Shown: positions 2,095-30,255, counted from the stretch's first letter. The stretch is 57,140 nt of DNA from Macrostomum lignano (GCA_002269645.1 NIVC01004166.1:1-57140); one strand, 5' to 3'. Numbers and translations: made by a program. Notes: a model not told the origin generated them from the letters alone.

Positions 2095-4889
<2,795 letters not shown>

Positions 4890-8280: not shown

Positions 8281-8305
8281 ACTCGCAAGCCCCAAATAAA
8301 TGAGC

Positions 8306-8926: not shown

Positions 8927-9380
<454 letters not shown>

Positions 9381-9743
9381 GGCAGGCGGGTAACTTCTGA
9401 ATTTACTGCCAGTAGATTTAGCAGGGAAAGAGGAAATTCCAATTGAAATTACTCTGATTCAAGATGGCTTTTGCAGTTATGAAAGCTACGAGCGTACAAC
9501 ATGCTATATTTTGTCGCTCAGTGTATTAATAACCGTGTATGATTTATAGTCTGCATAATTTATATTTAGAAAATTCCAGAAAGTAAATAGAATCTCTTGC
9601 TAATCCTTGCTTTCGCAGATGCCGTGAAGGAAACAGACAGCAATGGAGGATTATAAGTGACGCCAAACTGCGCATTAGTAAAATTCAGAAAAGTAATTAT
9701 TAATTAAAGAAAGCACGAAGCCTTAATACCCACGTAGATGAGT

Positions 9744-10205
9744 CCATCATTGCCTGTCTGTCACTAGCTGTTTAACTAAAAACCTGTCCATCATTGCCTG
9801 TCTGTCACTAGCTGTTTAACTACAAACCTGTCCATCATTGCCTGTCTGTCACTAGCTGTTTAACTAAAAACCTGTCCATCATTGCCTGTCTGTCTCTGGC
9901 TGTTTAACTAAAAACCTGTCCATCATTGCCTGTCTGTATCTGGCTGTTTAACTAAAAACCTGTCCATCATTGCCTGTCTGTATCTGGCTGTTTAACTAAA
10001 AACCTGTCCATCATTGCCTGTCTGTATCTGGCTGTTTAACTAAAAACCTGTCCATCATTGCCTGTCTGTATCTGGCTGTTTAACTAAAAACCTGTCCATC
10101 ATTGCCTGTCTGTATCTGGCTGTTTAACTAAAAACCTGTCCATCATTGCCTGTCTGTATCTGGCTGTTTCCCCTAAAAACCTGTCCATCATAGCAACGCC
10201 TGTCT
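9744..10205. repeat. 43-bp minisatellite (AAAACCTGTCCATCATTGCCTGTCTGTATCTGGCTGTTTAACT)n
   Basis: About 10 tandem copies with a variant gradient. Confidence 0.97.
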
Positions 10206-10642
10206 GTCAACACCAACCCTTAGTCTCATCCAGTTCTCTCCATGCTCAGCCCAAAATACACCTGTTGAGAGTTTGGGCGGATAATTTTTTTCACAAATCC
10301 ACCAAGCTAAGGGAGTGCTGAATATCCTTATGGGAAATATATATCCCAACTCTAAAGGCTGCTTCTTTAATTATGCATGGAAACATAAATATTCTATAAG
10401 CAAATTTCTTTGCATACTGGAAACCGCCCTGCATCCTATCTACAGTTTGCAATGCATTTATTTAAGCTTCAGTCAACTTCGAGATGGAATGCAATAGCTG
10501 TGCGAATATAACCAGCAGCAGACATCCCAGCCCTACCATCCCAGGTTAAAAATGGAATAAGCACTAAAATTTTTATTTGCTCAATATAGATAGAGGAAGA
10601 ACTCCCAGAATGCTATCTAGCAGCACTAATTGCTGCCAGAGT

Positions 10643-10683
<41 letters not shown>

Positions 10684-11117
10684 TGAACTCAAATCTCAAT
10701 AGCGGTACAATTTCAGTTCTTTTAAGATAAAAAAGCTGTCTTTGCAAACGGCGTTTTTCGAGTACAATGTAGCAGCTAGGGGTTATAGTGCGGCAGATAC
10801 AGAGAATATCATTATTATGCTTTGGTTTTCTCTCCTTTTAATTGGAATAATGCTAATATTAATAATCATTCGTGTTAAAAACATATGCGACATAAAAGTT
10901 CTAAAGTGTTCAACCTAATTAGTCAAAACCTAATTAGCTTTAAACACAAGATGCCGTTCTGACTATACATACTGTACATGAAGTTTAAAAACTTTCCAGC
11001 TAGTTAACCTAAAAAATCCACTTAATTAACAATAAACAAACTAATAAGCCTAAATTAGACCCATTTATTAGCCTGAAAATACATGTAGCTACCAAATTAG
11101 TCGGAAAGTGGCTAACC

Positions 11118-11340
11118 AATTAGCCTGAAAATGGCTACCCAATTAGCCTGAAAATGGCTACCCAATTAGCCTGAAAATGATTACCCAATTAGCCTGAAAA
11201 TGGCTACACGATTAGCCTGAAAGAGGCTACCCAATTAGCCTGAAAATGATTACCCAATTAGCCTGAAAGTGGCTACCCAATTAGCCTGAAAATGGCTACC
11301 CAATTAGCCTGAAAATGATTACCCAATTAGCCTGAAAATG
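11118..11340. repeat. 23-bp minisatellite (CCAATTAGCCTGAAAATGGCTAC)n
   Basis: About 10 tandem copies. Confidence 0.96.
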
Positions 11341-12733
11341 GCTGCATGGCTGAATATGACAATTGTCACAAGTACTCTCGCACTTAAACAGCGAACCCAA
11401 CTGCAAAGGTGCAGCGTGACATCACGTGACACTAAATACTCACGGGCGTCTCCGCGGTCGAACAGGAGCACGAGCAAAGATTGTCGCGAAGCCGTCGGCG
11501 AAACGATTCGCCAAGGCTCGGCTGCTGGTGCATGCTCAGGCTTTCAACTAATCAGTTAAAGGCACTTAGCCTGTCATTTTCTTGTTCTTTTCTTCCGTCT
11601 CAATTCCAGAAGAGGTTGCCTGCTCACCAGTTTGTTTAATACTGTCGTGCTGCCATTCTATGACTTGAAAGACCTCAAAGGGCACAAGTGTTCCGATGTG
11701 AACCTGGCGTGAGCGATCTCTCTCCTCTTCTGTTCTTCGCTTTCGAAAAGCTGCAAGCGTGCTGCCTTTCACCCCACCCCGCCAATTCTCTCTCTATCTG
11801 CCGCAATTCGCGGGTACCGCAGCAGCGGCATTCGACCCGAGCTACCCTCCGCCCTACCCAGACACGCGCACAAGCCCACCACCCAACCACAGGTCGAGAG
11901 CGAGTGGTTTCTCTCTGTTCGCCATCAACCCCAACCCCCCCTCCCCCCCCCTAAGCAAGCTCATATGGTTCATATGGCTCGGCCCAGGCATGAGTCATGA
12001 ATTCTCCGGCCGGCAGGCGAACGGCTAACCAGACCATTGCTCTGGCAGCGGTACATGTACGCCCTCCAATATTGCAGTGTACATGCATTTGCGGCGAATT
12101 AAAACTTGGCGATTTAATGTACAAGGGTGCAATGCTCTTGACTCCGTGTTGATCGAATGAAGACACAACTAACTTGTTCTTGGATTAACATAACAATAAA
12201 ATGCTTCAATTATGGAAACAAAGTACATTATGTATATTCCTTTCGGCAGGGCCTAAAACCTGACAATGTAAAAAATTTGACAAAAAATCAATAAAAGATG
12301 AACATATTTAACATATAGTATTCTCACACGCAAATGATATGCACTCTATTATAGTTTATTTGTTTTAATAAATATACAATAAACACAAAAGCAGAATTGC
12401 ATATCAGGTGCGATCGGCACTCTTAGCTTAGCTTAATTTGACAGCGAATTTCATATAAAAATATCTCCCCACGAAATGCAGTTGAATGAAACACTACTGG
12501 AGTTAGCTGGGCTGAGTCCAAGTATTTTTAATCTACTCCTACTGAGTGCCGCCCCGGTGCTATCTTGTACCTATTAAAAAATCACAAATCAAACAACACG
12601 TATCTATTTATGAACGGAACGAGTAGTTATATTTTTCTCAAGCAAACGGATTTGGATACAATAAATATCAAATATCAATCATAAGCGGTTTCAGTGAATA
12701 AGCAAATGTGCTGTGAATTTGTACGAAGCTTGA

Positions 12734-15700
12734 TCAGCGATAGTGCACAACCCGTTGCTCGCGCTGGCCACCGGCGAAGACGCGACAAATGATGTACATT
12801 CTAAGAATTTGAGAGGGTGGAAATCCGCGCGGTTGATTGATGCAAGCATTCTAGCCGTTTAAATCACCCGAAACCACTGAGATAATCCTGCTGGGATTGC
12901 AATAACACTGAGATAATCCTGCTGGGATTGCAATAACACTGAGATAATCCTGCTGGGATTGCAATAACACTGAGATAATCCTGCTGGGATTGCAATAACA
13001 CTGAGATAATCCTGCTGGGATTGCAATAACACTGAGATAATCCTGCTGGGATTGCAATAACACTGAGATAATCCTGCTGGGATTGCAATGATACTGAGAT
13101 AATCCTGCTGGGATTGCAATGATACTGAGATAATCCTGCTGGGATTGCAATGACATTGAGATAATCCTGCTGGGATTGAAATAACACTGAGATAATCCTG
13201 CTGGGATTGCAATGATACTGAGATAATCCTGCTGGGATTGCAATGATACTGAGATAATCCTGCTGGGATTGCAATGATACTGAGATAATCCTGCTGGGAT
13301 TGCAATGACATTGAGATAATCCTGCTGGGATTCCAATGGCACTGAGATAATCCTGCTGGGATTGCAATGATACTGAGATAATCCTGCTGGGATTGCAATG
13401 ATACTGAGATAATCCTGCTGGGATTGCAATGATACTGAGATAATCCTGCTGGGATTGCAATGATACTGAGATAATCCTGCTGGGATTGCAATGACATTGA
13501 GATAATCCTGCTGGGATTCCAATGGCACTGAGATAATCCTGCTGGGATTGCAATGATACTGAGATAATCCTGCTGGGATTGCAATGATACTGAGATAATC
13601 CTGCTGGGATTGCAATAACACTGAGATAATCCTGCTGGGATTGCAATAACACTGAGATAATCCTGCTGGGATTGCAATAACACTGAGATAATCCTGCTGG
13701 GATTGCAATGATACTGAGATAATCCTGCTGGGATTGCAATAACACTGAGATAATCCTGCTGGGATTGCAATGATACTGAGATAATCCTGCTGGGATTGCA
13801 ATGATACTGAGATAATCCTGCTGGGATTGCAATGATACTGAGATAATCCTGCTGGGATTGCAATGATACTGAGATAATCCTGCTGGGATTGCAATGACAT
13901 TGAGATAATCCTACTGGGATTGCAATGACAGATAATCCTGCTGGGATTACAATGACACTGAGATAATCCTGCTGGGATTGCAATGATACTGAGATAATCC
14001 TGCTGGGATTGCAATCACGCCTATGCAGAAGCTGAAAAATGGGGAAAGAAAATTCCCTAAGAAACTAATGCTTTTCCCAGCCCCAATGACCTATGCAGAT
14101 TTTAAAAACAGTGTCAGACAAATCTAATCGCCTTGTCCAAAAATAATAGAATGGAAAATTGAAATTATGTGTTCTCAGCTGCATGTTCAGTATTAGATTC
14201 GTCAGTTGCGCCATTGCAAGTAGTGAAAACAATTGCGTAACAAGAGCAGGCATCAATTGCAAAGTTTAGAGCATAAATTTAAGGGCGTCATAAAATGCTG
14301 TACATTATTAGATAGAAATTTTGGCAGACAACTCAAATGTACATATTTATTGAGATCTATTGTGATTAAGGGATTGAGAAACAATGAATAGACTATGTAC
14401 ATTCATAAAGTAGAACATGCCTCTTATCACAAGTTTGCTAACACGCAGACTTCCTTTGAAAATAAAGTTGCAGTCAATTGAAACAATTACCCTCAGTACT
14501 CAAATCAGTTCTCTGGCCTCGCGATGCCAAACTTTCGACGCACACATGAAGAGAATCGTATCTGGTGCTGCATCCTCTGCTTCCGCAAAGCCGATCGCGT
14601 TATTTCAGCTGCTCAAGCAGAACTCATCGAGCAATTTATCCTGCCAGAATTCTGTCATGCCTACATCCGTAATACTCTGCCAGGAGGCATGTGCAGCTGC
14701 TGCAGCAAGAAATTGCAGTCACAGACGTCACCTGTACCGCAAGAACTGCCTGCTCGACTGCCATACCTTCAAATTGTTGCAGATTTGGAGGTTTTGCCAC
14801 AACTCACACGTGAGCATCCGCACTGCTCCTGCTGTATCTGCCAGGTAGTTTCCAGCCCATCAAACAAGCGGGTGGCGGTCTGGCACCCATACATGTCTGA
14901 CAGCAGCCGGGCCAACCATAAATTGCCCCAAGGACGACCTGCAGAAACAACTCGAAGCCAGGACAGAGACTCGGAGAAGCGCTGCACTAGGTGCCACTCA
15001 CTTGTGGGCAAAGGCCTAAGGCACAAGTGCAGCGTCTCCAGCAAGTTGCAGTACCTGCGCACGCTCAGCCCTACATCAAAAGAGCACATCGCTCATGACG
15101 TGATGCGTGAAAAGCTAAGAGCAGCAGCAGCATCAGGACATGGATCAACGGCTTCTATTTCCAGCGCCACCGGTGGCCCACCAATGCAGCTGAGGCATGC
15201 AAGTGATTCAAATGAGCAGAGAGCGCTGAGGACCGAGACACTAGTAACGTTAAAGACATCTCTCAATCTGAGTGACCGGCAGACAAACATGGCAGCCACA
15301 ATTATCAGGCAGGCGGAGGGCAGTCGTAAGGCCGTGCAACCCGGACTGCGGGCAGCTCTGGCAGCCGCAGGCAGCATCGCAGAGAGTTTTTTTGAGATGC
15401 GGCAGCTCAAATTCACTCAAAAGTCCTCAGGTGGCAGCTTTACTGATACCACAAGATGTTCCGTCATATGCCCCGATCTGCAGGGCCTGCTGAGCTTCAT
15501 TTGCTCAAAGCGAGGATTTAGTGAGTTCGATGTGAGATTGAAGCTAGGGATGGACGGAGGTGGTGGCTCGCTAAAAATCTGCCTTAGTGTCGCCCCAGTA
15601 CTGCCTACCGAACCACAGGCAGAGTCCACACCTAAGAAGCTGAGCAGGGAGTCGCGAATAAGCAACTTTGGCATAAAAAAACTGTTTATCATCGCGATTG

Positions 15701-18700
15701 CTGAGGATGTCCAGGAGAACTATGCAAATGTGCGAGCACTTCTAGATGAGCTAGACTTGACATCGATTAAGTTCACAGTCGCTTGCGACTTCAAGCTAGC
15801 CAACATCCTGTGTGGCCTTCAAAGTCATGCCGCAGCTCATCCTTGTCTCTACTGTGAGGGGCAGGCGCCGTGGCAAGTTGCCGGTTCCATGAGAACCCTT
15901 GGATCCATTCGTCGGATGGCCACGGCATTCGAGGCTGCTGGTAGCTGCCAGCGACTGGCACTTACTTAACTTAACTTAGCTGCAGGGCGGTCCGAAGACG
16001 CAGCGGGGAGGCGAGCGTCGCCCATTCCGCTAATCCCTGAAAGACCCGCATAGGCTAGGGCGCGGGGCCGGTCAGGGAGGTCTGCCGGTCCTGTCTGCAG
16101 CGTTGTCTTCGGTGGGGAAGACGGAGGCTCGCTTGGTGGCCCGGAGGAACCGGATGAGCCGTGGGATGTTCTCGGGCCGGCAAACGTCGTCCAGGGACGG
16201 GTTGGGCCCGAGGTGGTTGAGCCGGTCTCGGTTGAAGGCCGGGCAGTAGCAGACGAAGTGCATGGCATCTTCATTCTCGAGGCTGCAGAAGGGGCAGAGT
16301 TCACTCCGGCGAACACATCGGAGGAAGCAGTGCCTGGCAAAGCAACCGTGACCTGTGAAGGTCATAGTGAGAGCGCGGATATCTTTTCGATTTTGATTCA
16401 AAAGGATTCTCCGCAGCTTGAGGGACGGATTGGGCACTGCCGCACGAGATTGGCGGCAGTTGGAGATACCATCCCATCTGCGCAAGTGCAGGATGTCCGC
16501 CCAGTCGTTAATCTGACGATTAATGACTGTGGCGGGGATGGGGGCCAGGGGCACGGGGCCAAGGGGCGAGCCGGAACAGCCCGCCTTAGCGAGGGAGTCG
16601 GCGAGCTCGTTACCTTTGAAGCCGGCGTGTCCTGGGATCCACGTGAGCCGGACGGTGTTCCTCCGAGCCAGCTTGTTGAGCTGCCCGATACAGTCGCGGA
16701 CTGTTCGGGAGTTCGTAGTGGTGTGACACAGGGCCTGTAAAGCGGCCTGGCTGTCAGAGTGGAAGAAGATTCTTCTGTCCTTGAAGTCCTTGCGGTGGAG
16801 CTCAGCTGCACAGGAGCTGATGGCAAGGACTTCATTCTGGAAGACGCTGGAGAGTCTGCCAGTGTGTTGGGCGTGAGTAGCAATCACGCGGCCGTTGATA
16901 AGGATGCAGACTCCAAAGCCGGATAAACCGTCTTTGGAGGATCCGTCAGTGAAGCAGTGAACCTCCTGAGGGGCCCAGCTGTCGTTGGCGTTCTCCCTGG
17001 AGGGGATCGTGACCTTGAAGCGTTGGTAGAGGTTGAGGGAGCGCGGTTCAGCGTCCGAAAGGACAGCCGCACTCCCACTCTCCTCCAGAACTTTAAGGCA
17101 CAGGTCAGAGTGCGGCAGGAGCTTGCGCTTCGCCATCGCTCTTTGTGGCTTGAAGCTAACACCAGCCTCGATGAGCCGGCGGGTGGTTTTAGCAGCCTCG
17201 CGACGGACAAAGATGTCCAGAGGCGGGAGGCAGAGAAAGGCGTTGAGGCCGTCAAAGGGAGCAGAGAGCGGGGCATTCAGGATCATGCGGCACGCACGTC
17301 CCTGCACCTTTTTGAGGGCTTCGTGGCAGGTTTTAATCTGCAAGGCGCTGGTCCAGACCAGGCCGGCGTATGTAACGGCCGGTCGGACCATTGCGGTATA
17401 GATCCACCAGAGACGCTTTGGGGTGAGGCCCCAGGTGGTGCCGACGGCTCTGCGCAGCTGCGCAAGAATCGCGAGGGCTTTTTTGGTTTTGGCCTGGACG
17501 TGGGTGGACCAGCTCAGCCGGTGGTCCAGCGTAACGCCGAGACACTTGGTTTGCTTGCAGGATGGAATTTCCACCCCGTAAAGCTTTAGTGGGCGAATAC
17601 GCCAGTTTACCCTGCTGGTGAACATGATCGCGACAGTTTTGGTCTCGGAGAGCCTGAGGCCGCACCTGTCCGCCCAACGTTCAGCAGAGCGAATGAAGTT
17701 TTGCAAAAGATCTCTAAGGGTTTCAGGTGACGGTCCGGATGCCACGGCTGTGACATCATCGGCGTAACCGACCTTGAGGATGGGGTCAAGATGGCTGTCC
17801 TGGAGGAGCTCATCGATGACCATGTTCCAGAGAACTGGAGAGAGGACACCGCCCTGGGGGCTGCCTTTGCAGACGGTTACCGTCCGTTGGTGGCCCAACA
17901 GGTGTGCGGTGGCAGTACGGTGGCTGATCATATACATGATCCACCGGGTGAGGTGCGAGTGGGTTCCTCTAGCACGTAGAGCTCTGTCAAAGGCCTCAAA
18001 GAGGACATTATCGAAGGCTCCAACAATGTCGAGGAAGACAGCGAGAGCGTAGCCATTACCAAGAACGGCTTTCTCCAGCATGTCAACCAGAACGTGAAGC
18101 GCGCTCTCCGTGGACCTGCCTGCCCGAAAGGCATGCTGGTTCTCACTGAGCGGCTTGTTCTTCAGTTCCACAGAGAGGAGGCGCCAGAGCACCAGTCTCT
18201 CTAACAGCTTCACCAATGAGGAGGTGAGGCTAATTGGTCTGAAGGATTTAATGGACCGGTAGTCCGGTCGGCCAGGCTTGGGGATAAAGACCACCTTGGC
18301 CTCGGTCCAGGATTTCGGAACAAAGCCGAGCACAATGCAGGCTTTCAGAAGCCGGCAAAGGTTCCGCAGGAAACCGGTGCATTTCACCGCCTCCCGCAGG
18401 AAGGCTGGCACAACGCCGTCCGGTCCTGGGGATTTGAAGGGTTTGAAGGAGGAGACAGCTTTAGTAACGCGGTCCTCCGTGATGATTGAGTCAGCCAGTA
18501 CGTGTCCGCCCACTGAGTGGTCAGGGGGGCCGGGCCTAGCTGGCTCGTTCGGGAAAAACGCTGTTAGCATCGCTTCCAGTGTTTCTCCTGGGTTCTCAGT
18601 GAGCGAGCCGTCGGCTCTCTTGACTGAGGAGAGTTTGGACATTTTGTCCAGGGTGAGGGCTTTAACGATTCTGGAGGTGGGGCGGGAGCCCTCAAGTTCC

Positions 18701-21700
18701 TCACAGTATTCGCGCCACTTGTTGGTTTTGGCGTTCCTAACCTGCCTCTTGAACTCGTGGATAGAGTTCAGGTAGGCGGTTTGGTCGGCCGGGTTTTTAG
18801 TTTTTTGGGCCCTGCGGTGAAGCCTTTTGGCTCTGCGACGGAGGTCGCCAAGCTGCGGGTTCCACCATGGGGCCGACTGTTTGCCTTTATATGCCTTTAG
18901 TGGGCATGAGGCTTCGAAGGCAGCAGTGAGCGAGTCCGTAAGTGCGGCCGCAAATTCATCTGCTTCTTCGCAGGTGTTGATGGAGACTGGAGCGCTAGTG
19001 CAACGATAGGTCTCCTCCAGGGCAAGCCTGAAGGCGGTCCAGTCGGTATTCCTAGCATTCCGTTTCCAGTAAAGCTGGCCTGCGTTACGGGCGCTGGCCA
19101 GCGTGAAAGAGATGAACTTGTGATCGGAGAGGGACGCCTCAGGAAGCACCCGCCATTCCCTAGTGCTCTGGAAGAGCCTGGGCGTGGCGAGGGTGGCATC
19201 CAGCACCTCCGATCGGCGTCCGTTATTGAAGGTAGGGGTACTACCCGAGTTACAGAACTCAAGGGTTGTAGTAGCAATATAAGCCAGGAAGTCTTCACCT
19301 CTCTGGTTTATATCAGAACTGCCCCAGTGGGTGTGGTGGGCATTGATGTCACCTGCCACGAGCAGCTCATAGTTTCTGGTGGAGCAGAGCTCGACCAGTG
19401 TGACAAGCTCTACTGGGATCATCTCGCCGTCGCCCGGTAGGTAAACCGAGGCGATGAGGGTAGTCCTCCCAGGGAGTATGTCTTCAGACTGGATGACACA
19501 GATGTCCCTGGTGGACAGGTCTGATCTGAGCCATGCGTTAATAGAACTGGACACCATGATGCAGGATCTTGGTGCCAGGTTTCCCTCCCGGGTACCAGCG
19601 GTTAAACACTGGTAGCCGGTGGGGACATGTTGGGGGCTGCCCCTAAGCGTCCAAGGTTCCTGGATAAGGATAATCCCTGGCACGTATTGGTCAGTGTGCT
19701 TCAAGAGGTTGACTGAAGCAGCAATGCTGTGCTGCAGGTTGACCTGCAAGCAGTGGATGCCCTGGGAGACAGTCATGTCTACTGTCCAGGGGAGGAGAAA
19801 AGCAACTCATTCTCAGCCTCATCGGTGAGAGTTGAGTCGCCAATTTCCATTGGCTCAGGCTCAGCCGCCTCCCCAGCCGCCGCGGAGGCGGACACGGCGC
19901 CCACGGCAGGTGAGTCACCTAGCCGCGCTACACCGCCCTCCTCCCAGCGACTGGGGTACGGCTGCTGCCTTCGCCTTGCGCCCCGCCGTCGGGAGTCTGA
20001 GCTCGGCCGGCAGCGTCCTCCTGGTGGTAATCCCACCAGTTGGAAGGCTGAGCCGTGCCGTCGTCCAGTTCCCTCGGCTGGCTTTCAGTGTTTTTTCGAG
20101 CGGCACGAGTCTGCTCGAGGTGAAGTCTCAGAGACTGAGCTTCGTCAAGTGCGCGCTGGATTAGACCGGACCGCCGGCTACTGCGGGCGGGTCTACGTCC
20201 GCGCGAGGCGGACTCAGCAGCGCGAATAGCCTTGTTAGGCTCGGGATCGGGTTGCTGCTGCCGCTTGGCCGGCGGGGCATGAGCCCCAGCTCCGGGAGCG
20301 GCGCGCTTCCCGTCTTTCTTGGTCTCCACCTTGCCCTCCTCACAGCGGAGGATGGTCAGTTGATGGAGACCAAGGTGGAGGTTTGTGCCGTGCGGTAGCC
20401 GCTTGGCCCATCCCTCCGTCAGGCCGAGGATGACTGTGGCCCCGGTCGTGCCCTTGCGGACCGTGCTGTGGTACACAAGACCACTGGCGTCGAGATCCGG
20501 GTGCCGCTTGAGCAGGAGCTGCCGCAGCTGCTCCCCGGACTTGATTGCACTGTCGGCCGGGACCCAAATCCGATGGCGGATGGTCTTCGGCCGCTCGCTC
20601 TCCAAGGCGAAGGTCAGCTGGCCCAGGTCGCTGTGCCAGTCGAACTTGGGCAGCTGATCCCGCAGGAGCTGGGTGCTCTCCTCGGATTTGCACCACAGTA
20701 GGATGCACCCGTTCGCCTTGGTGGACTTGACGATGTCCACGAAGACGCCCTCCAGGGTTAGATTGAGCAAGCCCTCGTCGATGGTACGCCACGCGACGTC
20801 GAGCTGCTCGGGCGTCAGGTCGAAATCCCCGCCGAGGATCATCACGGCGGGTTGCAGCGGCTGCTTGACCTTGGACGCGTAGGACTCGGAGGTCTTGAGC
20901 GGGGCCGCTTTGTCTTTGGAAGGCGGTAGGCCGGCAGGGTTGCCCCCTGAGAGCCCGAGGACACGGCGGTTCCTGACGGCCCAGCCGCGCCACCGGACTC
21001 CCCAGAGGGCCTCCCCGCTGCGGTGGCTCCCGAAGGCCTCACCGCGGCTTGCGTGCCCTCCTCAGACGCAGCAGCAGCCCGCTTCTCCTGCCGCTTACGG
21101 TTGCGGCGGATGTTCCGCTGTCGTCGAGACTCGGCCGTGCGCGGTCGGCTAGACTGGCGGCCAGGGTGATCGGCGGCAGCGTCAGCTGGCCCGGTTGGAC
21201 CAGGTTGGGCGTTGGTGCTACCAGTGGTAGCTACCGGAGCGGCTGATCCCGGTGAGCCAGAGGCGACCGGGTCAGTTTCTTTAGGGATGGTGGCGTTAGT
21301 GGCCATAGCTGAAAAGCGGGGGAGGGCTACTCGTTATGCGAGTTGAGTACCCGACTGGCCGACACCTCAAGCCAGCCGGTTTGAAAAAAGGACCGCTAGC
21401 GACCGGACTACTCCCCGGCCTTCCAGCCCATCGGCACGGTCAAACACCTTAGGCATTAGAGGGTACGTTAAGCAGTACCACGGCCTGCAGGCTGGTGAGC
21501 CAGACCCGCATACCCAAATTCGGCCGAAGCCACTGGATAGGGTCGCCAGCGCCGGAGCCCAGTCTGTCCAGCAGCCCTAGGGTCTGCCTTGAACACACGC
21601 GGGGACGAGTACCCCTGGGTCGACTTGCGAGACAGCGTGGGGGAGTCTGCGGCTGCCAGAGGCAAATAGAGGGTGCAGACCTCCCACCAGCCTTGACCTG

Positions 21701-24700
21701 CTGAAGATGGGGGCAGGCGTGAAGCATCGCAGACCTTAGCTCGTAGGCCTAGTCTGTCTCATACTTCACTGGCATGCTGAATACGCCTTCGCGTGCCAGC
21801 GACTGGCAAGAAACTACGCAAGCTGTGTCAGACGGCCTCTTCTCCCTGGGGCTGATTCTACGCCAATGCTGGACCTCGTGCCACCACCAGAGCTGCACAT
21901 CATGCTTGGTGTGACCAACAAACTGCTCGATCAGCTGAACTCAGCTTGGGGCGACGACAAGGCATACAAGTGGGCGCATTCAGCTGGAATCTGTCGCGAG
22001 CAGTACCACGGCGGGTGTCTGGAAGGCCCTGCGTGTGTCAGATTGCTGCTTAAAGCTCAAGAGCTCAAGAGCAACCTGCCATCAAGGCTCCAGGGCTATG
22101 CGTCTGCTCTTATGGCATTCGATGCTGTTCGCCAAGCATGCTTTGGGCAACAGCTGATGAGCGACTTTTGCCAGAAGATTGCCCAGCTGGAATCCTGCTG
22201 CGCTGAACTGAAGCTGGTGCCGACACCTAAGATGCACGCCCTTTTCCACCATGTTCCGGAGTTCTGCGAGCGATTCAACTCAGGCCTTGGGACCTTCAGT
22301 GAGCAGGCAGTCGAGTCTGCACACAGCGACTTTCGTTTGACGTGGCAGCGGTTTCGCAGGCCTCTGGGGCATGTGCAGTATGCAGAATGCCTGCTGCGCG
22401 CAGTTGTTAGCTACAATTCCAGCCATATTTGATGTCAAGCATTTTTATGCCTGCCAAGATTTCTAGGATTTAGCTTGTGTACTTAACATCCATGCGCACT
22501 TTATTCCATACGGACATTAGCAATAATAAGTGCATGGTTCTCATTTTATAATATTAATACTAATACATTTGCACGTTCCTTTAATGATTAAAAATAATAT
22601 TAAAACTACGAACTTATATTAACATTAATATTATCGATGGGTTTCGCCTTAAATACCTATCATATTACATGTAATTTGCATATAATATAAAAAATTCATA
22701 TTACCATTTTTGACAAGGCGATTAGATTTGTCTGACACTGTTTTTGAAATCTGCATAGGTCCTTGGGGCTGCGAAAAGCATCAGTTTCTTTGGGAATTTT
22801 CTTTCCCCATTTTTCAGCTTCTGCATAGGCGTGCAATGATACTGAGATAATTCTGCTGGGATTACAATGACACTGATATAATCCTGCTGGGATTGCAATA
22901 ACACTGAGATAATCCTGCTGGGATTGCAATGATACTGAGATAATCCTGCTGGGATTGCAATGATACTGAGATAATCCTGCTGGGATTGCAATGACACTGA
23001 GATAATCCTGCTGGGATTGCAATGATACTGAGATAATCCTGCTGGGATTGCAATGACACTGAGATAATCCTGCTGGGATTGCAATGATACTGAGATAATC
23101 CTGCTGGGATTGCAATGACACTGAGATAATCCTGCTGGGATTGCAATGATACTGAGATAATCCTGCTGGGATTGCAATGATACTGAGATAATCCTGCTGG
23201 GATTGCAATGATACTGAGATAATCCTGCTGGGATTGCAATGATACTGAGATAATCCTGCTGGGATTGCAATTACACTGAGATAATCCTTCTGGGATTGCA
23301 ATGATACTGAGATAATCCTGCTGGGATTGCAATGATACTGAGATAATCCTGCTGGGATTGCAATGATACTGAGATAATCCTGCTGGGATTGCAATGACAC
23401 TGGGATAATCCTGCTGGGATTGCAATGACACTGAGATAATCCTGCTGGGATTGCAATGATACTGAGATAATCCTGCCGGGATTGCAATGATACTGAGATA
23501 ATCCTGCTGGGATTGCAATGACACTATGATAATCCTGCTGGGATTGCAATGACAGATAATCCTGCTGGGATTGCAATGGCACTGAGATAATCCTGCTGGG
23601 ATTGCAATGACACTGGGATAATCCTGCTGGGATTGCAATAACACTGAGATAATCCCACTGGGATTGCAATGACACTGAGATAATCCTGCTGGGATTGCAA
23701 TGATACTGAGATAATCCTGCTGGGATTGCAATGATACTGAGATAATCCTGCTGGGATTGCAATGACATTGAGATAATCCTACTGGGATTGCAATGATACT
23801 GAGATAATCCCCACTGGGATTGCAATGATACTAAGATAATCCTGCTGGGATTGCAATGACACTGAGATAATCCTGCTGGGATTGCAATGACACAGATAAT
23901 CCTGCTGGGATTACAATGACACTGAGATAATCCTGCTGGGATTGCAATGACACAGATAATCCTGCTGGGATTGCAATGACATTGAGATAATCCTACTGGG
24001 ATTGCAATGACAGATAATCCTGCTGGGATTCTAATGGCACTGAGATAATCCTGCTGGGATTGCAATGACACTGGGATAATCCTGCTGGGATTGCAATGAC
24101 ACTGAGATAATCCTTCTGGGATTGCAATGGCACTGAGATAATCCTGCTGGGATTGCAATGACACTGGGATAATCCTGCTGGGATTGCAATGGCACTGAGA
24201 TAATCCTGCTGGGATTGCAATGACAGATAATCCTGCTGGGATTGCAATGGCACTGAGATAATCCTGCTGGGATTGCAATGACACTGGGATAATCCTGCTG
24301 GGATTGCAATGACACTGAGATAATCCTGCTGGGATTGCAATGATACTGAGATAATCCTGCTGGGATTGCAATGATACTGAGATAATCCTGCTGGGATTGC
24401 AATGATACTGAGATAATCCTGCTGGGATTGCAATGACACTGAGATAATCCTGCTGGGATTGCAATGATACTGAGATAATCCTGCTGGGATTGCAATGATA
24501 CTGAGATAATCCTGCTGGGATTGCAATGACACTGAGATAATCCTGCTGGGATTGCAATGATACTGAGATAATCCTGCTGGGATTGCAATGACACTGAGAT
24601 AATCCTGCTGGGATTGCAATGATACTGAGATAATCCTGCTGGGATTGCAATGACACTGAGATAATCCTGCTGGGATTGCAATGATACTGAGATAATCCTG

Positions 24701-27700
24701 CTGGGATTGCAATGATACTGAGATAATCCTGCTGGGATTGCAATGATACTGAGATAATCCTGCTGGGATTGCAATGATACTGAGATAATCCTGCTGGGAT
24801 TGCAATTACACTGAGATAATCCTTCTGGGATTGCAATGATACTGAGATAATCCTGCTGGGATTGCAATGATACTGAGATAATCCTGCTGGGATTGCAATG
24901 ATACTGAGATAATCCTGCTGGGATTGCAATGACACTGGGATAATCCTGCTGGGATTGCAATGACACTGAGATAATCCTGCTGGGTTTGCAATGATACTGA
25001 GATAATCCCACTGGGATTGCAATGATACTAAGATAATCCTGCTGGGATTGCAATGACACTGAGATAATCCTGCTGGGATTGCAATGACACAGATAATCCT
25101 GCTGGGATTACAATGACACTGAGATAATCCTGCTGGGATTGCAATGACACAGATAATCCTGCTGGGATTGCAATGACATTGAGATAATCCTACTGGGATT
25201 GCAATGACAGATAATCCTGCTGGGATTCTAATGGCACTGAGATAATCCTGCTGGGATTGCAATGACACTGGGATAATCCTGCTGGGATTGCAATGACACT
25301 GAGATAATCCTTCTGGGATTGCAATGGCACTGAGATAATCCTGCTGGGATTGCAATGACACTGGGATAATCCTGCTGGGATTGCAATGGCACTGAGATAA
25401 TCCTGCTGGGATTGCAATGACAGATAATCCTGCTGGGATTGCAATGGCACTGAGATAATCCTGCTGGGATTGCAATGACACTGGATAATCCTGCTGGGAT
25501 TGCAATGACACTGAGATAATCCTGCTGGGATTGCAATGATACTGAGATAATCCTGCTGGGATTGCAATGATACTGAGATAATCCTGCTGGGATTGCAATG
25601 ATACTGAGATAATCCTGCTGGGATTGCAATGACACTGAGATAATCCTGCTGGGATTGCAATGATACTGAGATAATCCTGCTGGGATTGCAATGATACTGA
25701 GATAATCCTGCTGGGATTGCAATGACACTGAGATAATCCTGCTGGGATTGCAATGATACTGAGATAATCCTGCTGGGATTGCAATGACACTGAGATAATC
25801 CTGCTGGGATTGCAATGATACTGAGATAATCCTGCTGGGATTGCAATGACACTGAGATAATCCTGCTGGGATTGCAATGATACTGAGATAATCCTGCTGG
25901 GATTGCAATGATACTGAGATAATCCTGCTGGGATTGCAATGACATTGAGATAATCCTGCTGGGATTGCAATGACACTATGATAATCCTGCTGGGATTGCA
26001 ATGACAGATAATCCTGCTGGGATTGCAATGGCACTGAGATAATCCTGCTGGGATTGCAATGACACTGGGATAATCCTGCTGGGATTGCAATAACACTGAG
26101 ATAATCCCACTGGGATTGCAATGACACTGAGATAATCCTGCTGGGATTGCAATGATACTGAGATAATCCTGCTGGGATTGCAATGATACTGAGATAATCC
26201 TGCTGGGATTGCAATGACATTGAGATAATCCTACTGGGATTGCAATGATACTGAGATAATCCCACTGGGATTGCAATGATACTAAGATAATCCTGCTGGG
26301 ATTGCAATGACACTGAGATAATCCTGCTGGGATTGCAATGACACAGATAATCCTGCTGGGATTACAATGACACTGAGATAATCCTGCTGGGATTGCAATG
26401 ACACAGATAATCCTGCTGGGATTGCAATGACATTGAGATAATCCTACTGGGATTGCAATGACAGATAATCCTGCTGGGATTCTAATGGCACTGAGATAAT
26501 CCTGCTGGGATTGCAATGACACTGGGATAATCCTGCTGGGATTGCAATGACACTGAGATAATCCTTCTGGGATTGCAATGGCACTGAGATAATCCTGCTG
26601 GGATTGCAATGACACTGGGATAATCCTGCTGGGATTGCAATGGCACTGAGATAATCCTGCTGGGATTGCAATGACAGATAATCCTGCTGGGATTGCAATG
26701 GCACTGAGATAATCCTGCTGGGATTGCAATAACACTGGGATAATCCTGCTGGGATTGCAATAACACTGAGATAATCCTGCTGGGATTGCAATGACACTGA
26801 GATAATCCTGCTGGGATTGCAATGATACTGAGATAATCCTGCTGGGATTGCAATGATACTGAGATAATCCTGCTGGGATTGCAATGATACTGAGATAATC
26901 CTGCTGGGATTGCAATGACACTGAGATAATCCTGCTGGGATTGCAATGATACTGAGATAATCCTGCTGGGATTGCAATGACACTGAGATAATCCTGCTGG
27001 GATTGCAATGACACTGAGATAATCCTGCTGGGATTGCAATGATACTGGGATAATCCTGCTGGGATTGCAATGATACTGGGATAATCCTGCTGGGATTGCA
27101 ATGATACTGGGATAATCCTGCTGGGATTGCAATGATACTGAGATAATCCTGCTGGGATTGCAATGACATTGAGATAATCCTGCTGGGATTGCAATGACAC
27201 TGAGATAATCCTGCTGGGATTGCAATGATACTGAGATAATCCTGCCGGGATTGCAATGATACTGAGATAATCCTGCTGGGATTGCAATGACACTGAGATA
27301 ATCCTGCTGGGATTGCAATGACACTGAGATAATCCTGCTGGGATTGCAATGACACTGAGATAATCCTGCTGGGATTGCAATGATACTGGGATAATCCTGC
27401 TGGGATTGCAATGATACTGGGATAATCCTGCTGGGATTGCAATGATACTGGGATAATCCTGCTGGGATTGCAATGACACAGGAGCTGGGAATACAATGAC
27501 ACTGAGACAAAGAACTCACGAGGTGGCACCCAGCAGGAAGGAGGCGGCATGGCTGATCCAGCTTAGTAGCACAGAGCCGTCGCGCACCAGGCGAGTCTTG
27601 CGCAGACTGAGAAAGCGCCAGATTTGAAATTGGCGCGAGCCTGCCGTCTGGGAGCTGAAAAAATACCGCTCATTTATATCACGATTTGAGCTACTTATAG

Positions 27701-30255
27701 TAGCACGGTGCAGTTGTAAAAATTAGAAATTTCTACACAAAAAACTCACACGACAAATCTGGTGGGCCAGTCGCGCTGCCAGTCGCCGGCACCGCCGCTG
27801 CTCTGCAGTTGCGCACCGGCCTGTGGAGATGCGGGATGGACAGGGGGCTGTAAGGGATTCTCAATCAGGATTTGAAGGAAAATTCCTAATAGGGATTTAT
27901 GGTGAGATAATAGCAATAGAAATTCAAGGAGCCAGATTCTCAATGGAGGATTGGGGAAGATCTTGAATAGGGATTCTCAATGGGGATTCGAGGGGAGATT
28001 CTCAATGGGGATTCGATGGGAGATTCTCAATGGGGATTCTCAATGGAGATTCTCAATGGGGATTCGATGGGAGATTCTCAATGGGGATTCTCAATGGAGA
28101 TTCTCAATGGGGATTCGAGGGGAGATTCTCAATGGGGATTCTCAATGGAGATTCTCAATGGGGATTCGAGGGGAGATTCTCAATAGGAAATTGAAGGGAA
28201 ATTCTTAGTGAGATTTTTGAGGAATTTTCCTATTCACGATTTGATCACGAGGAAAGACCATACACCAACACCATATTAAAAAGATGAAAATAGAAACAAT
28301 AGTTAAAAACAGTAACATGAGTGCTACTTACAGCCAGAACTGCTGGGCTGTGACTGCCACTTCCAGCTATAGCCGGACTGGCACTGCCAGACTGGGCCAG
28401 TGAGGATTGGCCACTCTCTCTTTGGGCATCTATCAACAGCTTCTCCATAGCCTGGGAGCCACCAGCTCCAGTTGCTTGTGGGTTAGGGTCAGCAGCAAAC
28501 TGTACCTCTATCCAGGTGGCAGATGTGGCGGCATCTACATGAATACAAGTTACAAAAATAGTATTAAGTGAATATTCTAAATGTCTATAATATCTCTTAT
28601 TAAAAATTCAATATAAATCAATACCAAAGATATAATTGCATAAATTTCCTTAGAATAAATATTTTTAAAACCTTAACTGAAAGTAAATATTTTTGTAAAT
28701 TCTTAGACCCCTACTGATTTGCTTGATTCTTGAATAAAGACTATAATTATTATGCTTGCATAATAGTTGGACATTTTAGTAACAAGACATTTCAATAACA
28801 ACCTTTTTCTTTAAACTTGAAACAATATGAAATCTGATTTTAATATAATAACAAAACCAATCAATGTACTCAAAATTAATAAAGACAATGAATATTAAAA
28901 TTATGGGTATTATCCTTTTTAAATTAGCTTGACTTTGCAAATAAAGGCCTATTATTAATCAATAGACCCTATATGCTACAATTTTATTTGAGAAATGTCA
29001 TTGAAAAGGTTATCACCAAAACATGTTGTTACCAAGGTGTCTAGGGACTAGCTAACTAACCTATGCTTAACTGAACTATAATAAAATTTTATATTTTTAG
29101 GCATTTTATTAGATTATAAACTTATCATTTATATTTTTATGATCACCTTTGATCATCTCAAAGGTATTTAATTTACTAATGTTCATACCATTAGAAGGGC
29201 CACAATGACAAAATTGCAAAGTATTCCCAAAGAAGCCTTCTAGGGCTACATGGAGGCCTGGTGCAGAAGAATAGACAAGTGCATTTGGCTTAGGCAAAAG
29301 TATTTTGAAGGAGCCAGATTTGATTCTAATTGATTTTTGCTCTTAAATTTTCTATGAGCCCAAGTCCTAGAACTTTTCTAATATACATTGAAGAAAACAA
29401 AATTATCTTTCAAATAACACCAAACCAATATATTTGCACTAAAAATCATTAAGTTATATGTATTAGAACAAAAAATTAATTTTTGCAAAAAAGTTTTGCT
29501 TTTCTATGTATTTTTCTATTAAAAAATATATACAAAACTTATCACTAAAATCTTCATAACTTTTTTATTCAATCAATTTTCATTCATAAGCCCATTTTTG
29601 GAATACTATTAATGTACTCTATCATGTTTGATAATCATACTATCAAAATAAAAAGTTTTATTTTTTAAATCTTATTGACAGCCTATTATTAGTTATTTAC
29701 TTTGAATTTTGCAATCAATTTTCATTCTAAATAAAAATAAACACATATATCACAAGCTAGCTATCCTATAGAATCATCTGTTAATTTATTTTCTCATTGT
29801 TAAGTTATTCTTAGCATTTGAGTAGTCCAAAAAGCTTATTAAATCAATATTAAAACATTAGAATTAGAATAGAAGAACAGAGCAACTTTGTTTTCCTAAC
29901 GACCTAAGCAATAGAGCAACCACAGTCAACTTTTACAGAGTTAGGCCTAATAATTCATGGTTTTTAGATGCACCTCACTGGAAAGCAAGAATTTTTTCAC
30001 TTCAAAAGTTTTGTCTTTTTATACTTTTATATACTTTTATATGCAAATCATAATTAATAATTATAAACAAAAGGTAGGCCTAAGACGAAAATCGGCCAAC
30101 TTTTATATCCAAATCATAGGGGCCTAATAAATATTTATAAACAAAAGGTAAGACACCTTAAAAAAACTAAAGCAAGTAGGCCTAGTCTATAGAGAGACAG
30201 TAGTAAAGTTTAATAAAATCTTACCAATTGAAGTCTCAGCTCCAGTCAAAGACAT
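12734..30255 (-). CDS. BNIP3: BNIP3/NIX-like mitophagy receptor, 5 exons: 30225-30255, 28332-28534, 27750-27847, 27520-27654, 12734-12800; 177 aa
   Basis: GT-AG introns with matching phases (1,0,2,2) sum to 534 nt with a terminal TGA. The protein has LIR-like ATWIEV, MEKLLIDAQRESGQSS (cf. BNIP3 ILLDAQHESGRSS), DWQRDWPTR (cf. DWIWDWSSR), LSLRKT (cf. LSMRNT) and a C-terminal TM anchor SVLLSWISHAASFLLGATSMYIIC with the SHxx(A/S)xxxG motif. Comparison made from memory, not by search. Confidence 0.85.
12875..14015. repeat. 31-bp satellite (GAGATAATCCTGCTGGGATTGCAATRAYACT)n, left arm, ~37 units
   Basis: Read directly; ends exactly at the TSD of the DNA transposon. Confidence 0.98.
14524..22432 (+). 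CDS. DDE transposase split by LINE insertion: 14524-15960 + 21809-22432, 686 aa when rejoined
   Basis: 14524-15960 is exactly 479 codons, and 21809 continues in frame (RNYASCVRRP...) into the 188-aa ORF. N-terminal H-x7-C-x2-C...C-x2-C...H-x2-C zinc finger; candidate catalytic D (GMDGG), D (ACDFKLAN) and E (FSEQAVESAH); C2C (CLYC), LH (PELHIMLG) and H3H (KMHALFHH) motifs typical of CMC/Transib/RAG1. Confidence 0.88.
16072..19776 (-). CDS. LINE ORF2 (1234 aa): AP endonuclease + reverse transcriptase + RNase H + CCHC finger, uninterrupted
   Basis: QVNLQH...LIQEPW, GDINAHH, SDH (APE); KSPGPDG, FRPISLTS, QHAFR, FLDIVGAFD, GSPQGGVLSP, YADD (RT); FTDGS, EVLAI, SDSQAAL, WIPGH, GNELAD (RNase H); CPFC...H...C. 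Confidence 0.97.
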   Translation of the reverse strand: MTVSQGIHCLQVNLQHSIAASVNLLKHTDQYVPGIILIQEPWTLRGSPQHVPTGYQCLTAGTREGNLAPRSCIMVSSSINAWLRSDLSTRDICVIQSEDILPGRTTLIASVYLPGDGEMIPVELVTLVELCSTRNYELLVAGDINAHHTHWGSSDINQRGEDFLAYIATTTLEFCNSGSTPTFNNGRRSEVLDATLATPRLFQSTREWRVLPEASLSDHKFISFTLASARNAGQLYWKRNARNTDWTAFRLALEETYRCTSAPVSINTCEEADEFAAALTDSLTAAFEASCPLKAYKGKQSAPWWNPQLGDLRRRAKRLHRRAQKTKNPADQTAYLNSIHEFKRQVRNAKTNKWREYCEELEGSRPTSRIVKALTLDKMSKLSSVKRADGSLTENPGETLEAMLTAFFPNEPARPGPPDHSVGGHVLADSIITEDRVTKAVSSFKPFKSPGPDGVVPAFLREAVKCTGFLRNLCRLLKACIVLGFVPKSWTEAKVVFIPKPGRPDYRSIKSFRPISLTSSLVKLLERLVLWRLLSVELKNKPLSENQHAFRAGRSTESALHVLVDMLEKAVLGNGYALAVFLDIVGAFDNVLFEAFDRALRARGTHSHLTRWIMYMISHRTATAHLLGHQRTVTVCKGSPQGGVLSPVLWNMVIDELLQDSHLDPILKVGYADDVTAVASGPSPETLRDLLQNFIRSAERWADRCGLRLSETKTVAIMFTSRVNWRIRPLKLYGVEIPSCKQTKCLGVTLDHRLSWSTHVQAKTKKALAILAQLRRAVGTTWGLTPKRLWWIYTAMVRPAVTYAGLVWTSALQIKTCHEALKKVQGRACRMILNAPLSAPFDGLNAFLCLPPLDIFVRREAAKTTRRLIEAGVSFKPQRAMAKRKLLPHSDLCLKVLEESGSAAVLSDAEPRSLNLYQRFKVTIPSRENANDSWAPQEVHCFTDGSSKDGLSGFGVCILINGRVIATHAQHTGRLSSVFQNEVLAISSCAAELHRKDFKDRRIFFHSDSQAALQALCHTTTNSRTVRDCIGQLNKLARRNTVRLTWIPGHAGFKGNELADSLAKAGCSGSPLGPVPLAPIPATVINRQINDWADILHLRRWDGISNCRQSRAAVPNPSLKLRRILLNQNRKDIRALTMTFTGHGCFARHCFLRCVRRSELCPFCSLENEDAMHFVCYCPAFNRDRLNHLGPNPSLDDVCRPENIPRLIRFLRATKRASVFPTEDNAADRTGRPP
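19779..21306 (-). CDS. LINE ORF1, broken by two apparent 1-nt deletions (~509 aa if restored)
   Basis: The 154-aa ORF joins the 305-aa ORF if the C5 run at 20943-20947 gains one base (...QGGNPAG...SESYASKVK...VMILGGD). A second -1 shift between 20036 and 19928 would add the tail ending EPMEIGD...SSPGQ, whose TAG lies 2 nt before the ORF2 ATG. The central domain resembles Loa-type ORF1 (DUF4780-like, from memory). Confidence 0.75.
21555..21796 (-). ncRNA. HDV-like self-cleaving ribozyme at the LINE 5' end (long J1/2)
   Basis: P1 GCACGCG (21796-21790) / CGCGTGT (21601-21595) with G1-U wobble; P2 CCCAG / CTGGG; P3 GGG / CCC; 7-nt L3 TACTCGT; P1.1 AC / GT; P4 GCAGACCC-TA-GGGCTGC; J4/2 CAGA (C-N-R-A) with the candidate catalytic C at 21566. 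Elements occur in canonical order. Folded by hand, not tested. Confidence 0.82.
22834..27510. repeat. 31-bp satellite, right arm, ~150 units with ~1.2-kb higher-order repeats
   Basis: Same unit and orientation as the left arm; the rare variant TCTAATGGCAC recurs at 24031, 25228 and 26482. Confidence 0.98.
27960..28190. repeat. Minisatellite of GGGATTCTCAATG / GGAGATTCTCAATG / GGGATTCGA units in BNIP3 intron 2
   Basis: Composite tandem units read directly. Confidence 0.92.
29185..29390 (+). mobile_element. Decayed mariner transposase 3' end
   Basis: Translation IRRATMTKLQSIPKEAF*GYMEAWCRRIDKCIWLRQKYFEG matches the mariner C-terminal pattern L..IP...F....W..R..KCI....YFEG; contains an in-frame stop. 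Confidence 0.6.

Follow-up and report, generated by a model that had tools for sequence, protein, structure and literature searches.

Nested insertions of transposable elements in introns, in which one element has entered another that itself lies in a tandem repeat, are layered structures whose order can be read from intact target-site duplications (TSDs) and that spare the splice sites of the host gene. The last intron of BOX15_Mlig016490g1, a BNIP3-like gene of the flatworm Macrostomum lignano, holds such a nest, which we analyzed on contig NIVC01004166.1 (assembly GCA_002269645.1); the whole stretch of 57,140 nucleotides is called the window below, and all coordinates are window positions. 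The nest resembles these systems in its layering, its intact TSDs and its untouched splice sites, with intron growth confined to one gene copy. It does not differ from them in kind, but the 20- to 25-fold gap in intron size between recent duplicates and the position of the intron in a membrane-helix codon are unusual. All of the components are of known kinds (an intronic minisatellite, a cut-and-paste transposon of the CACTA/Mirage/Chapaev/Transib group, an RNase H-bearing long interspersed nuclear element [LINE] and a BNIP3-family tail-anchored protein). The individual representatives are new, none of them being named in any library searched, and the architecture is ordinary for this repeat-rich genome.

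BNIP3 and NIX (BNIP3L) are tail-anchored mitophagy receptors. Self-cleaving ribozymes of the hepatitis delta virus (HDV) type are known at the 5′ ends of LINE clades that include R2, RTE, L1Tc and Baggins. In flatworms, the Perere-3 LINEs of Schistosoma carry variants of the twister ribozyme (PMC8501958). RAG1 also arose from the CACTA/EnSpm-Mirage-Chapaev-Transib group of transposons. Members of the group are marked by C(2)C and H(3-4)H motifs, 5′-CA..TG-3′ termini and TSDs of 2–5 bp (PMC12730594). Chapaev elements, whose N terminus carries a zinc-finger domain (Chapa), branch off distantly within the Transib superfamily (PMC4411706).

Three layers in the last intron of one gene copy

The original prediction held that a satellite, a DNA transposon and a ribozyme-bearing LINE together form an intron at 12801-27519 that splits a Ser codon in the BNIP3 membrane anchor. 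The interval is exactly the last intron of the gene: splicing across it yields the annotated protein PAA48361.1, and the helix that it interrupts aligns with the solved transmembrane domain 2J5D. The three layers of the nest were borne out as well, with TSDs, a restored satellite phase and a restored transposase frame, while the ribozyme label was not, given the lack of an Rfam match and of an HDV fold. The boundaries and strands of the elements, the duplications, both empty-site reconstructions, the empty sites in other gene copies and the protein families were all established directly. The features are as follows.

12801..27519 (−): intron 4, the last intron of BOX15_Mlig016490g1; 14,719 bp, phase 2, GT-AG
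12875..14015: acceptor-side satellite arm; 36.9 copies with 95% matches (Tandem Repeats Finder), its last four bases, CAAT, being one copy of the transposon TSD
22838..27479: donor-side satellite arm; ~150 units (Tandem Repeats Finder span 22832-27479, 151.4 copies, 93% matches)
14016..22833 (+): DNA transposon between the satellite arms; 2,970 bp without the LINE, termini 5′-CACGCC...GGCGTG-3′
14016..14138 (+): left terminal inverted repeat; ~122 bp, ~95% identical to the right one
22711..22833 (−): right terminal inverted repeat
14524..15960 (+): transposase frame, N-terminal 479 codons, interrupted by the LINE
21809..22432 (+): transposase frame, C-terminal part
15961..21796 (−): LINE; 5,836 bp, full length, sense to the host gene, inside the transposase frame
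15946..15960: 3′-side copy of the LINE TSD, TGCCAGCGACTGGCA (plus-strand reading)
21797..21808: 5′-side copy of the LINE TSD; the whole identical 15-mer TGCCAGCGACTGGCA spans 21794-21808

The TSD of the transposon is the 4-bp CAAT found at 14012-14015 and 22834-22837, and when the element and one CAAT are deleted in silico, the spacing of the satellite motif is exactly 31 bp across the joint. The LINE can be removed in the same way. The plus-strand open reading frames (ORFs) at 14524-15969 and 21866-22432 are the two halves of one transposase gene, and taking out the LINE with one TSD copy restores a single frame of 686 amino acids that reads ...SCQRLA|RNYASCV... at the joint. The final three bases of the 15-mer (21794-21796) are also the ones with which the LINE starts, a microhomology between target and element. 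The transposase is coded on the plus strand, antisense to the BNIP3-like gene, whereas the LINE and the gene both lie on the minus strand, as had been predicted.

Two further gene copies are present in the assembly (P0002 on NIVC01004116.1, P0003 on NIVC01001111.1), and their proteins are both 98% identical to that of the window copy. Their last introns occupy the same codon position, have the same donor and acceptor flanks and measure 713 bp (locus L002) and 580 bp (locus L003), and they hold only the 31-bp satellite, with slightly fewer than 20 units each. Given these shared introns with empty insertion sites, the intron and the satellite are older than the split between the copies, the transposon is a later arrival and the LINE the latest; the satellite-only introns thus agree with the order that had been read from the TSDs. 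The presence or absence of the insertions, which the original prediction proposed to compare, could be followed between the gene copies: the insertion of transposon plus LINE is specific to the window copy. The position of the intron inside the membrane-helix codon is ancestral and was not caused by the insertions.

The minisatellite itself has grown too. Its two arms in intron 4 comprise ~188 units in total (5.8 kb), and with the nest removed the intron of the window copy would still measure 5.9 kb; therefore, satellite growth contributed as much as the insertions did. At both ends of the intron unique sequence is spared, 40 bp past the donor and 74 bp, including the pyrimidine tract, ahead of the acceptor, and the donor and acceptor flanks match those of the short-intron copies completely or almost completely. 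Of the M. lignano genome as a whole, 15% is tandem repeat (PMC5730564).

Our best explanation of the locus as a whole, to which we assign a probability of about 0.85, is passive nested insertion together with satellite growth in the last intron of one BNIP3-family copy, with no recognizable ribozyme involved. The ancestral last intron would have been ~0.6–0.7 kb long, made up almost wholly of the 31-bp minisatellite and already situated in the Ser codon of the membrane helix, in a gene that came to exist in at least three copies. In the window copy only, the minisatellite would then have expanded to its ~188 units; next, an autonomous 2,970-bp transposon of the CACTA/Mirage/Chapaev/Transib group would have entered a satellite unit in antisense orientation by cut-and-paste transposition, duplicating CAAT. 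Finally, a 5.8-kb LINE would have entered the transposase frame in sense orientation by target-primed reverse transcription, with duplication of 12–15 bp and inactivation of the transposon. The nest would be passive cargo that leaves splice sites, unique flanks and coding sequence untouched.

Elsewhere in the window there are many further minisatellites, as expected for a tandem-repeat-rich genome. Those at 1-11400 and 38300-43600 have periods of 4, 13, 14, 23, 24, 35, 37 and 44 bp, and several of them lie in introns of a neighboring kinase gene. The strong purine-strand bias at 1-3000 and 5000-7000 has its source in GA-rich arrays. A tandem repeat of 25/51 bp in intron 2 (27966-28205; L002:12300-12700) is longer in L002 than in the window, the opposite of the situation with the intron-4 satellite.

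The host gene and its copies

At its 5′ border on the minus strand, intron 4 reads ...TTC CTG CTG GGT GCC ACC TC|GTGAGT (27520/27519), with the donor GTGAGT at 27519-27514. At its 3′ border the sequence is ...CTCAAATTCTTAG|A ATG TAC ATC ATT TGT... (12801/12800), with the acceptor ...TTCTTAG at 12801. The codon of Ser147 is thereby cut TC|A within ...LLGAT-S-MYIIC. The exons are as follows.

27750..30255 (−): upstream part of the gene, exons 1–3
30255-30225 (−): exon 1, with the ATG at 30255
28534-28332 (−): exon 2
27820-27750 (−): exon 3
27520..27654 (−): exon 4, coding for ...RFLSLRKTRLVRDGSVLLSWISHAASFLLGAT and the first two bases of the Ser codon, which make up the first part of the membrane helix
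12734..12800 (−): coding part of exon 5, the last Ser base followed by MYIICRVFAGGQREQRVVHYR and the stop

Joined with GT-AG borders throughout, the five exons give 507 nt, the translation of which is identical to the annotated 168-aa PAA48361.1 (P0001); a conceptual splice of these minus-strand exons had one database protein as its match, identical over its full length (100% identity, 100% coverage). In the locus retrieved for this protein, which spans contig positions 2734-40255 in reverse, the gene has the very coordinates given here. Introns 1 to 4 are 1,690, 511, 95 and 14,719 bp long, and the last of them is ~10 times as long as the average M. lignano intron of 1.1–1.4 kb (PMC5730564). 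A literature search for Mlig016490 returned nothing.

The protein scores 22.0 bits (E = 1.4e-4) with the Pfam BNIP3 model (PF06553), for which the gathering cut-off is 26 bits. An exhaustive phmmer search against 1.84 billion representatives brought up no more than five relatives besides the protein itself, at E = 1.7e-6 to 4e-4; each of them has a Pfam BNIP3 match at E ≤ 0.01 (9.5e-42 for the best). In the alignment with these relatives the blocks of the family are visible, namely SW[VI]E[VL], MEKLLxxAQRES, DWxWDWSSRPE (DWQRDWPTR in the window protein), LSLRxT and the helix ISHAxSFxLGA, and a profile of the six sequences matched 2J5D at E = 7e-5 over the intron-bearing helix, with ISH...LG aligned. 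Because of the Pfam-positive relatives, the shared blocks and the profile match to 2J5D, the protein is taken to be a divergent member of the BNIP3 family, and intron 4 falls in the C-terminal third of its predicted membrane helix. With BNIP3 and NIX it shares the W-x-x-[ILV] motif (TWIEV), the MEKLLxDAQRES block, the DW..DW block, the LSLRxT block and a C-terminal helix with Ser-His and a small-residue face (SHAASFLLGAT). It differs from them in being short (168 aa) and very divergent, with DWQRDWPTR in place of DWxWDWSSRPE and a sub-threshold Pfam score. Its function, including mitochondrial outer-membrane targeting and the binding of Atg8/LC3, is putative and assigned by homology, the W-x-x-V motif being present.

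Two database records at this gene family deserve a remark. The UniRef entry P0006 (Macrostomum, 1,551 aa), titled “non-specific serine/threonine protein kinase,” is a chimeric prediction over window 2098-21306 (−) that joins ORF1 of the LINE, with introns invented across its frameshifts, to parts of ORF2 and to the neighboring kinase gene (~11521-2098), skipping exon 5 of the BNIP3-like gene. The UniRef100 cluster of P0003 bears the name “Cytochrome c oxidase assembly protein COX20, mitochondrial,” apparently through a naming mistake or because the gene is fused to another in a different annotation.

In the 3′ flank, the window copy differs from L002 and L003 by ~3% plus several indels, as counted from the alignment, whereas L002 and L003 are almost identical to each other. 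Between the coding sequences of the window copy and L002, we counted by hand three nonsynonymous and about nine synonymous differences in 507 nt, numbers that are small yet fit a constrained coding sequence. The bases specific to the window copy are T27606, G27585 and AA27564-27563 in exon 4 and A12755 in exon 5. The M. lignano assembly is highly redundant, with recent genome and chromosome duplication (PMC5730564), and because the strain carries that duplication, the gene copies may be duplicated loci rather than alleles. Their relation is a mosaic one: in exon 2 (28332-28534) the window copy equals L003 save for one base and L002 has four private synonymous changes, while exons 4–5 and the 3′ flank set the window copy apart from L002 and L003, which agree with each other. 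This pattern suggests gene conversion or recombination among the copies.

The transposon and the LINE

The transposon begins with CACGCCTATGCAG... and ends with ...CTGCATAGGCGTG. A 5-bp TSD (GCAAT), which can formally be read and would fit classical Transib elements, was considered and rejected: the termini would then be asymmetric. Because a metagenome relative (L119, 51% identical) likewise ends ...GGGGCGTG (...CGTG), the terminal G is assigned to the transposon and the TSD is 4 bp long. The flanks of related transposons were uninformative; the left end of L119 enters a (GC)n stretch and L120 reaches the end of its contig.

The transposase has no Pfam match, and its relatives give only a weak DUF1280 match, at 0.015, in one of them; a sequence-profile search of PDB gave nothing meaningful. 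Eight relatives (P0080-P0087) were found among 5.8 billion proteins, none of them named, and they come from metagenome and run assemblies and from one NCBI genome, GCA_041192925.1. Their alignment conserves LKLGxDGGGG, AxDxKLANILxGxQSHxSxHPCxYC, PPPELHxMLG, TPKxHxLFxHVPEFC and FSEQAxES. The order of the motifs is a D, a second D with CxxC 19 residues on, HxxxxH and an E, and ACDFKLANILCGLQSHAAAHPCLYC, then KMHALFHH and then FSEQAVES are kept in the alignment. When the AlphaFold2 model of the transposase (mean predicted local distance difference test score 74.6) was searched with Foldseek, the top 21 matches were RAG1-containing entries of the RAG complex (best RAG1 match E = 6.5e-11, target TM score 0.54), followed by HzTransib, the Transib transposase of Helicoverpa (E = 2e-7); at E < 0.1 there was nothing besides RAG complexes and HzTransib.

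The transposase, as modeled, therefore has a RAG1/Transib-like predicted fold, and the element looks best described as Chapaev-like on the basis of its 4-bp TSD, its termini, its Cys-rich N terminus and that fold. The 5′-CAC...GTG-3′ termini and a TSD within the 2- to 5-bp range are shared with the Chapaev/Transib group (PMC12730594), as are the C(2)C and H(3-4)H motifs, the Cys-rich N terminus and a predicted fold corresponding to the RAG1 core and HzTransib. The element departs from classical Transib elements in its TSD, which is 4 bp instead of 5 bp, and from the group in having no Pfam RAG1 or transposase match and in the length of its inverted repeats (122 bp).

The LINE that entered this transposase comprises the following parts.

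21696..21796 (−): structured start of the 5′ untranslated region (UTR), which is 490 nt long in all; it corresponds to L004:1-101, with predicted hairpins at nt 3-14, 28-78 and 79-101
19782..21306 (−): ORF1 region, with the ATG at 21306
16072..19776 (−): ORF2, intact, 1,234 aa; AP endonuclease, reverse transcriptase, RNase H and a Cys-rich tail
15961..15981 (−): tail of (TAAGT)n-like simple repeats that lacks poly(A), in a 3′ UTR of 111 nt

ORF2 matches the Pfam models Exo_endo_phos_2 (2.8e-20), RVT_1 (2.3e-34) and RNase_H (1.9e-12). The domains, the 15/15-bp TSD and the simple-repeat tail mark the element as a non-LTR (long terminal repeat) retrotransposon of the RNase H-bearing type, an assignment made from sequence features at the level of type. 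Where a relative on a 6,492-nt contig (L004; 60% ORF2 identity) has one ORF1 of 525 aa, the ORF1 region here shifts frame two or more times, and these changes may be real frameshifts or long-read indel errors. The LINE is full length by comparison with L004; its closest full-length relatives are unnamed. Its true 5′ end, G21796, is set by the start of L004, which begins at the aligned position, and by a second copy in the window (copy B), in which homology begins at the LINE 5′ end behind another flank.

Copy B (33056-33271, minus strand) is a 5′-only fragment of the same LINE family that covers LINE nt 5-221 at 92.6% identity and ends after ~217 nt. Truncation of LINEs normally removes the 5′ end, and a 5′-only fragment is unusual. 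Directly upstream of it, in a GC-rich block at 32–36 kb, lies the 3′ part of a more distant LINE (34278-35520, minus strand), which over 1.27 kb shares 66% identity with the 3′ end of the intronic element.

The LINE 5′ end and alternative accounts of the locus

HDV-type ribozymes are represented in Rfam by families such as HDV and CPEB3. They form a nested double pseudoknot, in which P1 (~7 bp) at the cleavage site is followed by P2, P3 with L3, the 3′ strand of P1, P4, J4/2 with the catalytic C and the 3′ strand of P2. A search of the whole window with the 4,227 Rfam families at the gathering score returned no match to any family, and in relaxed searches at E ≤ 10 over 21200-22000 and at E ≤ 5 over 12700-27700 no ribozyme, twister included, appeared and only chance matches to snoRNA, miRNA and lncRNA families were seen. 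Because HDV-type ribozymes are often missed by sequence models, a structural descriptor was built (P1 of 7 bp with ≤1 mismatch, J1/2 of ≤30 nt, P2 of ≥4 bp, P3 of 3 bp and L3 of 4–10 nt). An initial, looser version gave 880 solutions in 650 nt and was superseded by one anchored at the LINE start and accompanied by two controls, the cellular CPEB3 ribozyme, which the descriptor recovers with its published helices, and shuffled sequences. Anchored at LINE nt 1-4, the descriptor gave no solution in any of the three 5′ ends, those of the intronic LINE (copy A), copy B and L004. Of 250 positions, 34 admit a permissive solution, compared with 47 ± 14 in dinucleotide shuffles, and because this frequency is at the level of chance, HDV-like solutions near the LINE 5′ end carry no information.

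The nearest solution, an HDV-shaped fold starting from 21802/21803 (P1 TCGCTGG/CCAGTGA, P2 AGGCG/CGCCT, J4/2 UCA), was rejected. The 5′ strand of its P1 is the target-site duplication, on which a LINE that is not site-specific cannot rely; the fold is not kept in copy B, where the flank is different and a T of the prospective P3 has become a C, or in L004; and it overlaps a long hairpin that covaries. A twister variant of the Perere-3 type was rejected as well, the core …GUCCCAAGCCCGG…GUAAA… being absent from the LINE 5′ sequence; the twister core elements (L1 UAA, P2, P4 with GUCCCAAGC, GUAAA and GAGGG; PMC8501958) were not found there.

What the LINE 5′ end does have is conservation and a candidate structure of another shape. 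The first ~100 nt are far better conserved than the proteins; conservation sets in precisely at nt 1, and within the first 75 nt the blocks GTATGAGA, AGGCC, GCTAAGGTCT and CGATGC are common to copies A and B and L004. RNAalifold, run on these three sequences, predicts the three hairpins, of which the one at nt 28-78 is long and has internal loops, and nine of the predicted pairs have changed on both sides. No covariation was found for an HDV P1 or P2; the comparative fold, which is unknotted, instead pairs nt 3-14 among themselves, with two compensatory pairs, and this hairpin occupies bases that an HDV-type P1 would require. The T23C change of copy B would, moreover, disrupt the one P1 that is conceivable at all. 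The covariation of the three hairpins is suggestive, coming from three sequences of which two are 93% identical, and the single-sequence fold of the 161-nt stretch is not unusually stable (z = −1.09). A scan of metagenomes with the LINE motif GGCTAMGGTCTNCGATGC gave 114 stretches, none of the fetched loci among which held the second motif, so that these are chance matches; the pattern itself misses copy A. The hairpins possibly represent an internal promoter, a protein-binding element, a translation element or a processing element. The LINE resembles R2, RTE, L1Tc, Baggins and Perere-3 elements in being full length with a conserved, structured 5′ terminus, and Perere-3 also in occurring in a flatworm and in its short simple-repeat 3′ tail (GTAA repeats in Perere-3), but differs from these ribozyme-bearing LINEs in lacking a double pseudoknot, a twister core and an Rfam match and in the first hairpin, which takes up the P1 bases. 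To judge from its sequence, it carries no recognizable self-cleaving ribozyme.

These results bear directly on the claim that the sense-strand LINE places an HDV-type ribozyme with a cleavage site at 21796 in the BNIP3-like pre-mRNA, cutting it there and truncating transcripts ahead of the tail-anchor exon. The precedent of several LINE clades, the twister variants of flatworm Perere-3 (PMC8501958), the strongly conserved and structured 5′ end and the HDV-shaped fold that can formally be drawn from 21802 all speak for it. Against them stand the absence of an Rfam ribozyme match at every threshold tried, a CPEB3-validated descriptor that stays empty at nt 1-4 in all three sequences, permissive solutions no more frequent than chance and the missing twister core; the fold at 21802 moreover borrows TSD bases, is missing in copy B and clashes with the covarying hairpin. 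We consider this account barely credible, and the accompanying remark that a G at position −1 would slow HDV-type cleavage becomes moot with no HDV-type fold at the LINE 5′ end. Somewhat less remote, yet still improbable, is a 5′-processing or self-cleaving RNA of an undescribed, non-HDV kind in the hairpins, which would cut the host co-transcript at or near 21796. Promoterless LINEs need release from co-transcripts, and flatworm LINEs use ribozymes (PMC8501958); conservation that starts exactly at nt 1, well above what the 60% identity of the ORF2 proteins would lead one to expect, and nine predicted pairs with compensatory changes would fit such an element. An internal DNA promoter or a binding site for a LINE protein, however, predicts equal conservation, the covariation is thin, the stability of the stretch is ordinary and the metagenome scan recovered no relative. 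The chance is correspondingly slim that the ~100-nt three-hairpin start represents a new class of self-cleaving RNA of flatworm LINEs in the role that twister variants have in Perere-3.

A different objection concerns the host gene. In the GenBank annotation, exons 4 and 5 are spliced together over the nest. That annotation draws on transcript evidence only, combining BLAT alignments of de novo transcripts, filtered to those no more than 1% below the best, with StringTie on STAR alignments (PMC5730564), and from it we infer that the window copy is transcribed and spliced in the animal. Several points weigh against our account of passive nested insertion. The splicing of the window copy rests on this deposited annotation; no Logan transcript contig encoding exactly the window protein is on record; and multi-mapping reads that stem from the two copies with short introns may have contributed to the gene model. 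The BNIP3-like protein itself stays below the Pfam gathering cut-off (22 versus 26 bits), the superfamily of the transposon (Chapaev or another branch of the group) was set from TSD, termini and fold, and errors in the long-read (PacBio-based) assembly could have altered the copy number of the satellite and could have produced the ORF1 frameshifts of the LINE. Two AATAAA and three ATTAAA motifs lie on the sense strand of intron 4, where some premature termination may occur. One could accordingly hold that the window copy is a decaying duplicate whose giant intron is spliced poorly or not at all, its model deriving from reads or transcripts of the short-intron copies. In favor of this view are the redundancy of the assembly through recent genome or chromosome duplication (PMC5730564), the two near-identical short-intron copies, the intron length of ~10 times the species average and the sense-strand LINE with the few AATAAA/ATTAAA motifs in the intron. 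Opposed to it are the intact reading frame, flanks and splice sites (8/8), the ratio of ~3 nonsynonymous to 9 synonymous substitutions relative to L002 and the BLAT filter, which should bar a transcript from a copy that is ~3% plus indels apart. Decay of the window copy thus appears unlikely, though it deserves more credit than either account that invokes a self-cleaving RNA, and passive insertion into a copy that is still spliced remains the reading we prefer.

The claim of a mitophagy-receptor pre-mRNA cut by a ribozyme is not supported by these tests. The LINE 5′ element is a small candidate for experiment; if it were a 5′-processing element, the sense LINE would cut the BNIP3-like pre-mRNA inside intron 4. 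The transposon adds a compact, recently intact flatworm transposase with a predicted RAG1 fold, from a family that lies outside Pfam coverage and has few known relatives. The locus as a whole offers a clean and fully resolved case in which an intron has grown >20-fold in one gene copy with the coding sequence untouched and the empty sites kept in the sister copies, and the presence or absence of the nest, together with the copy-specific bases, provides a marker for whether Macrostomum duplicates with unequal intron loads are expressed equally.

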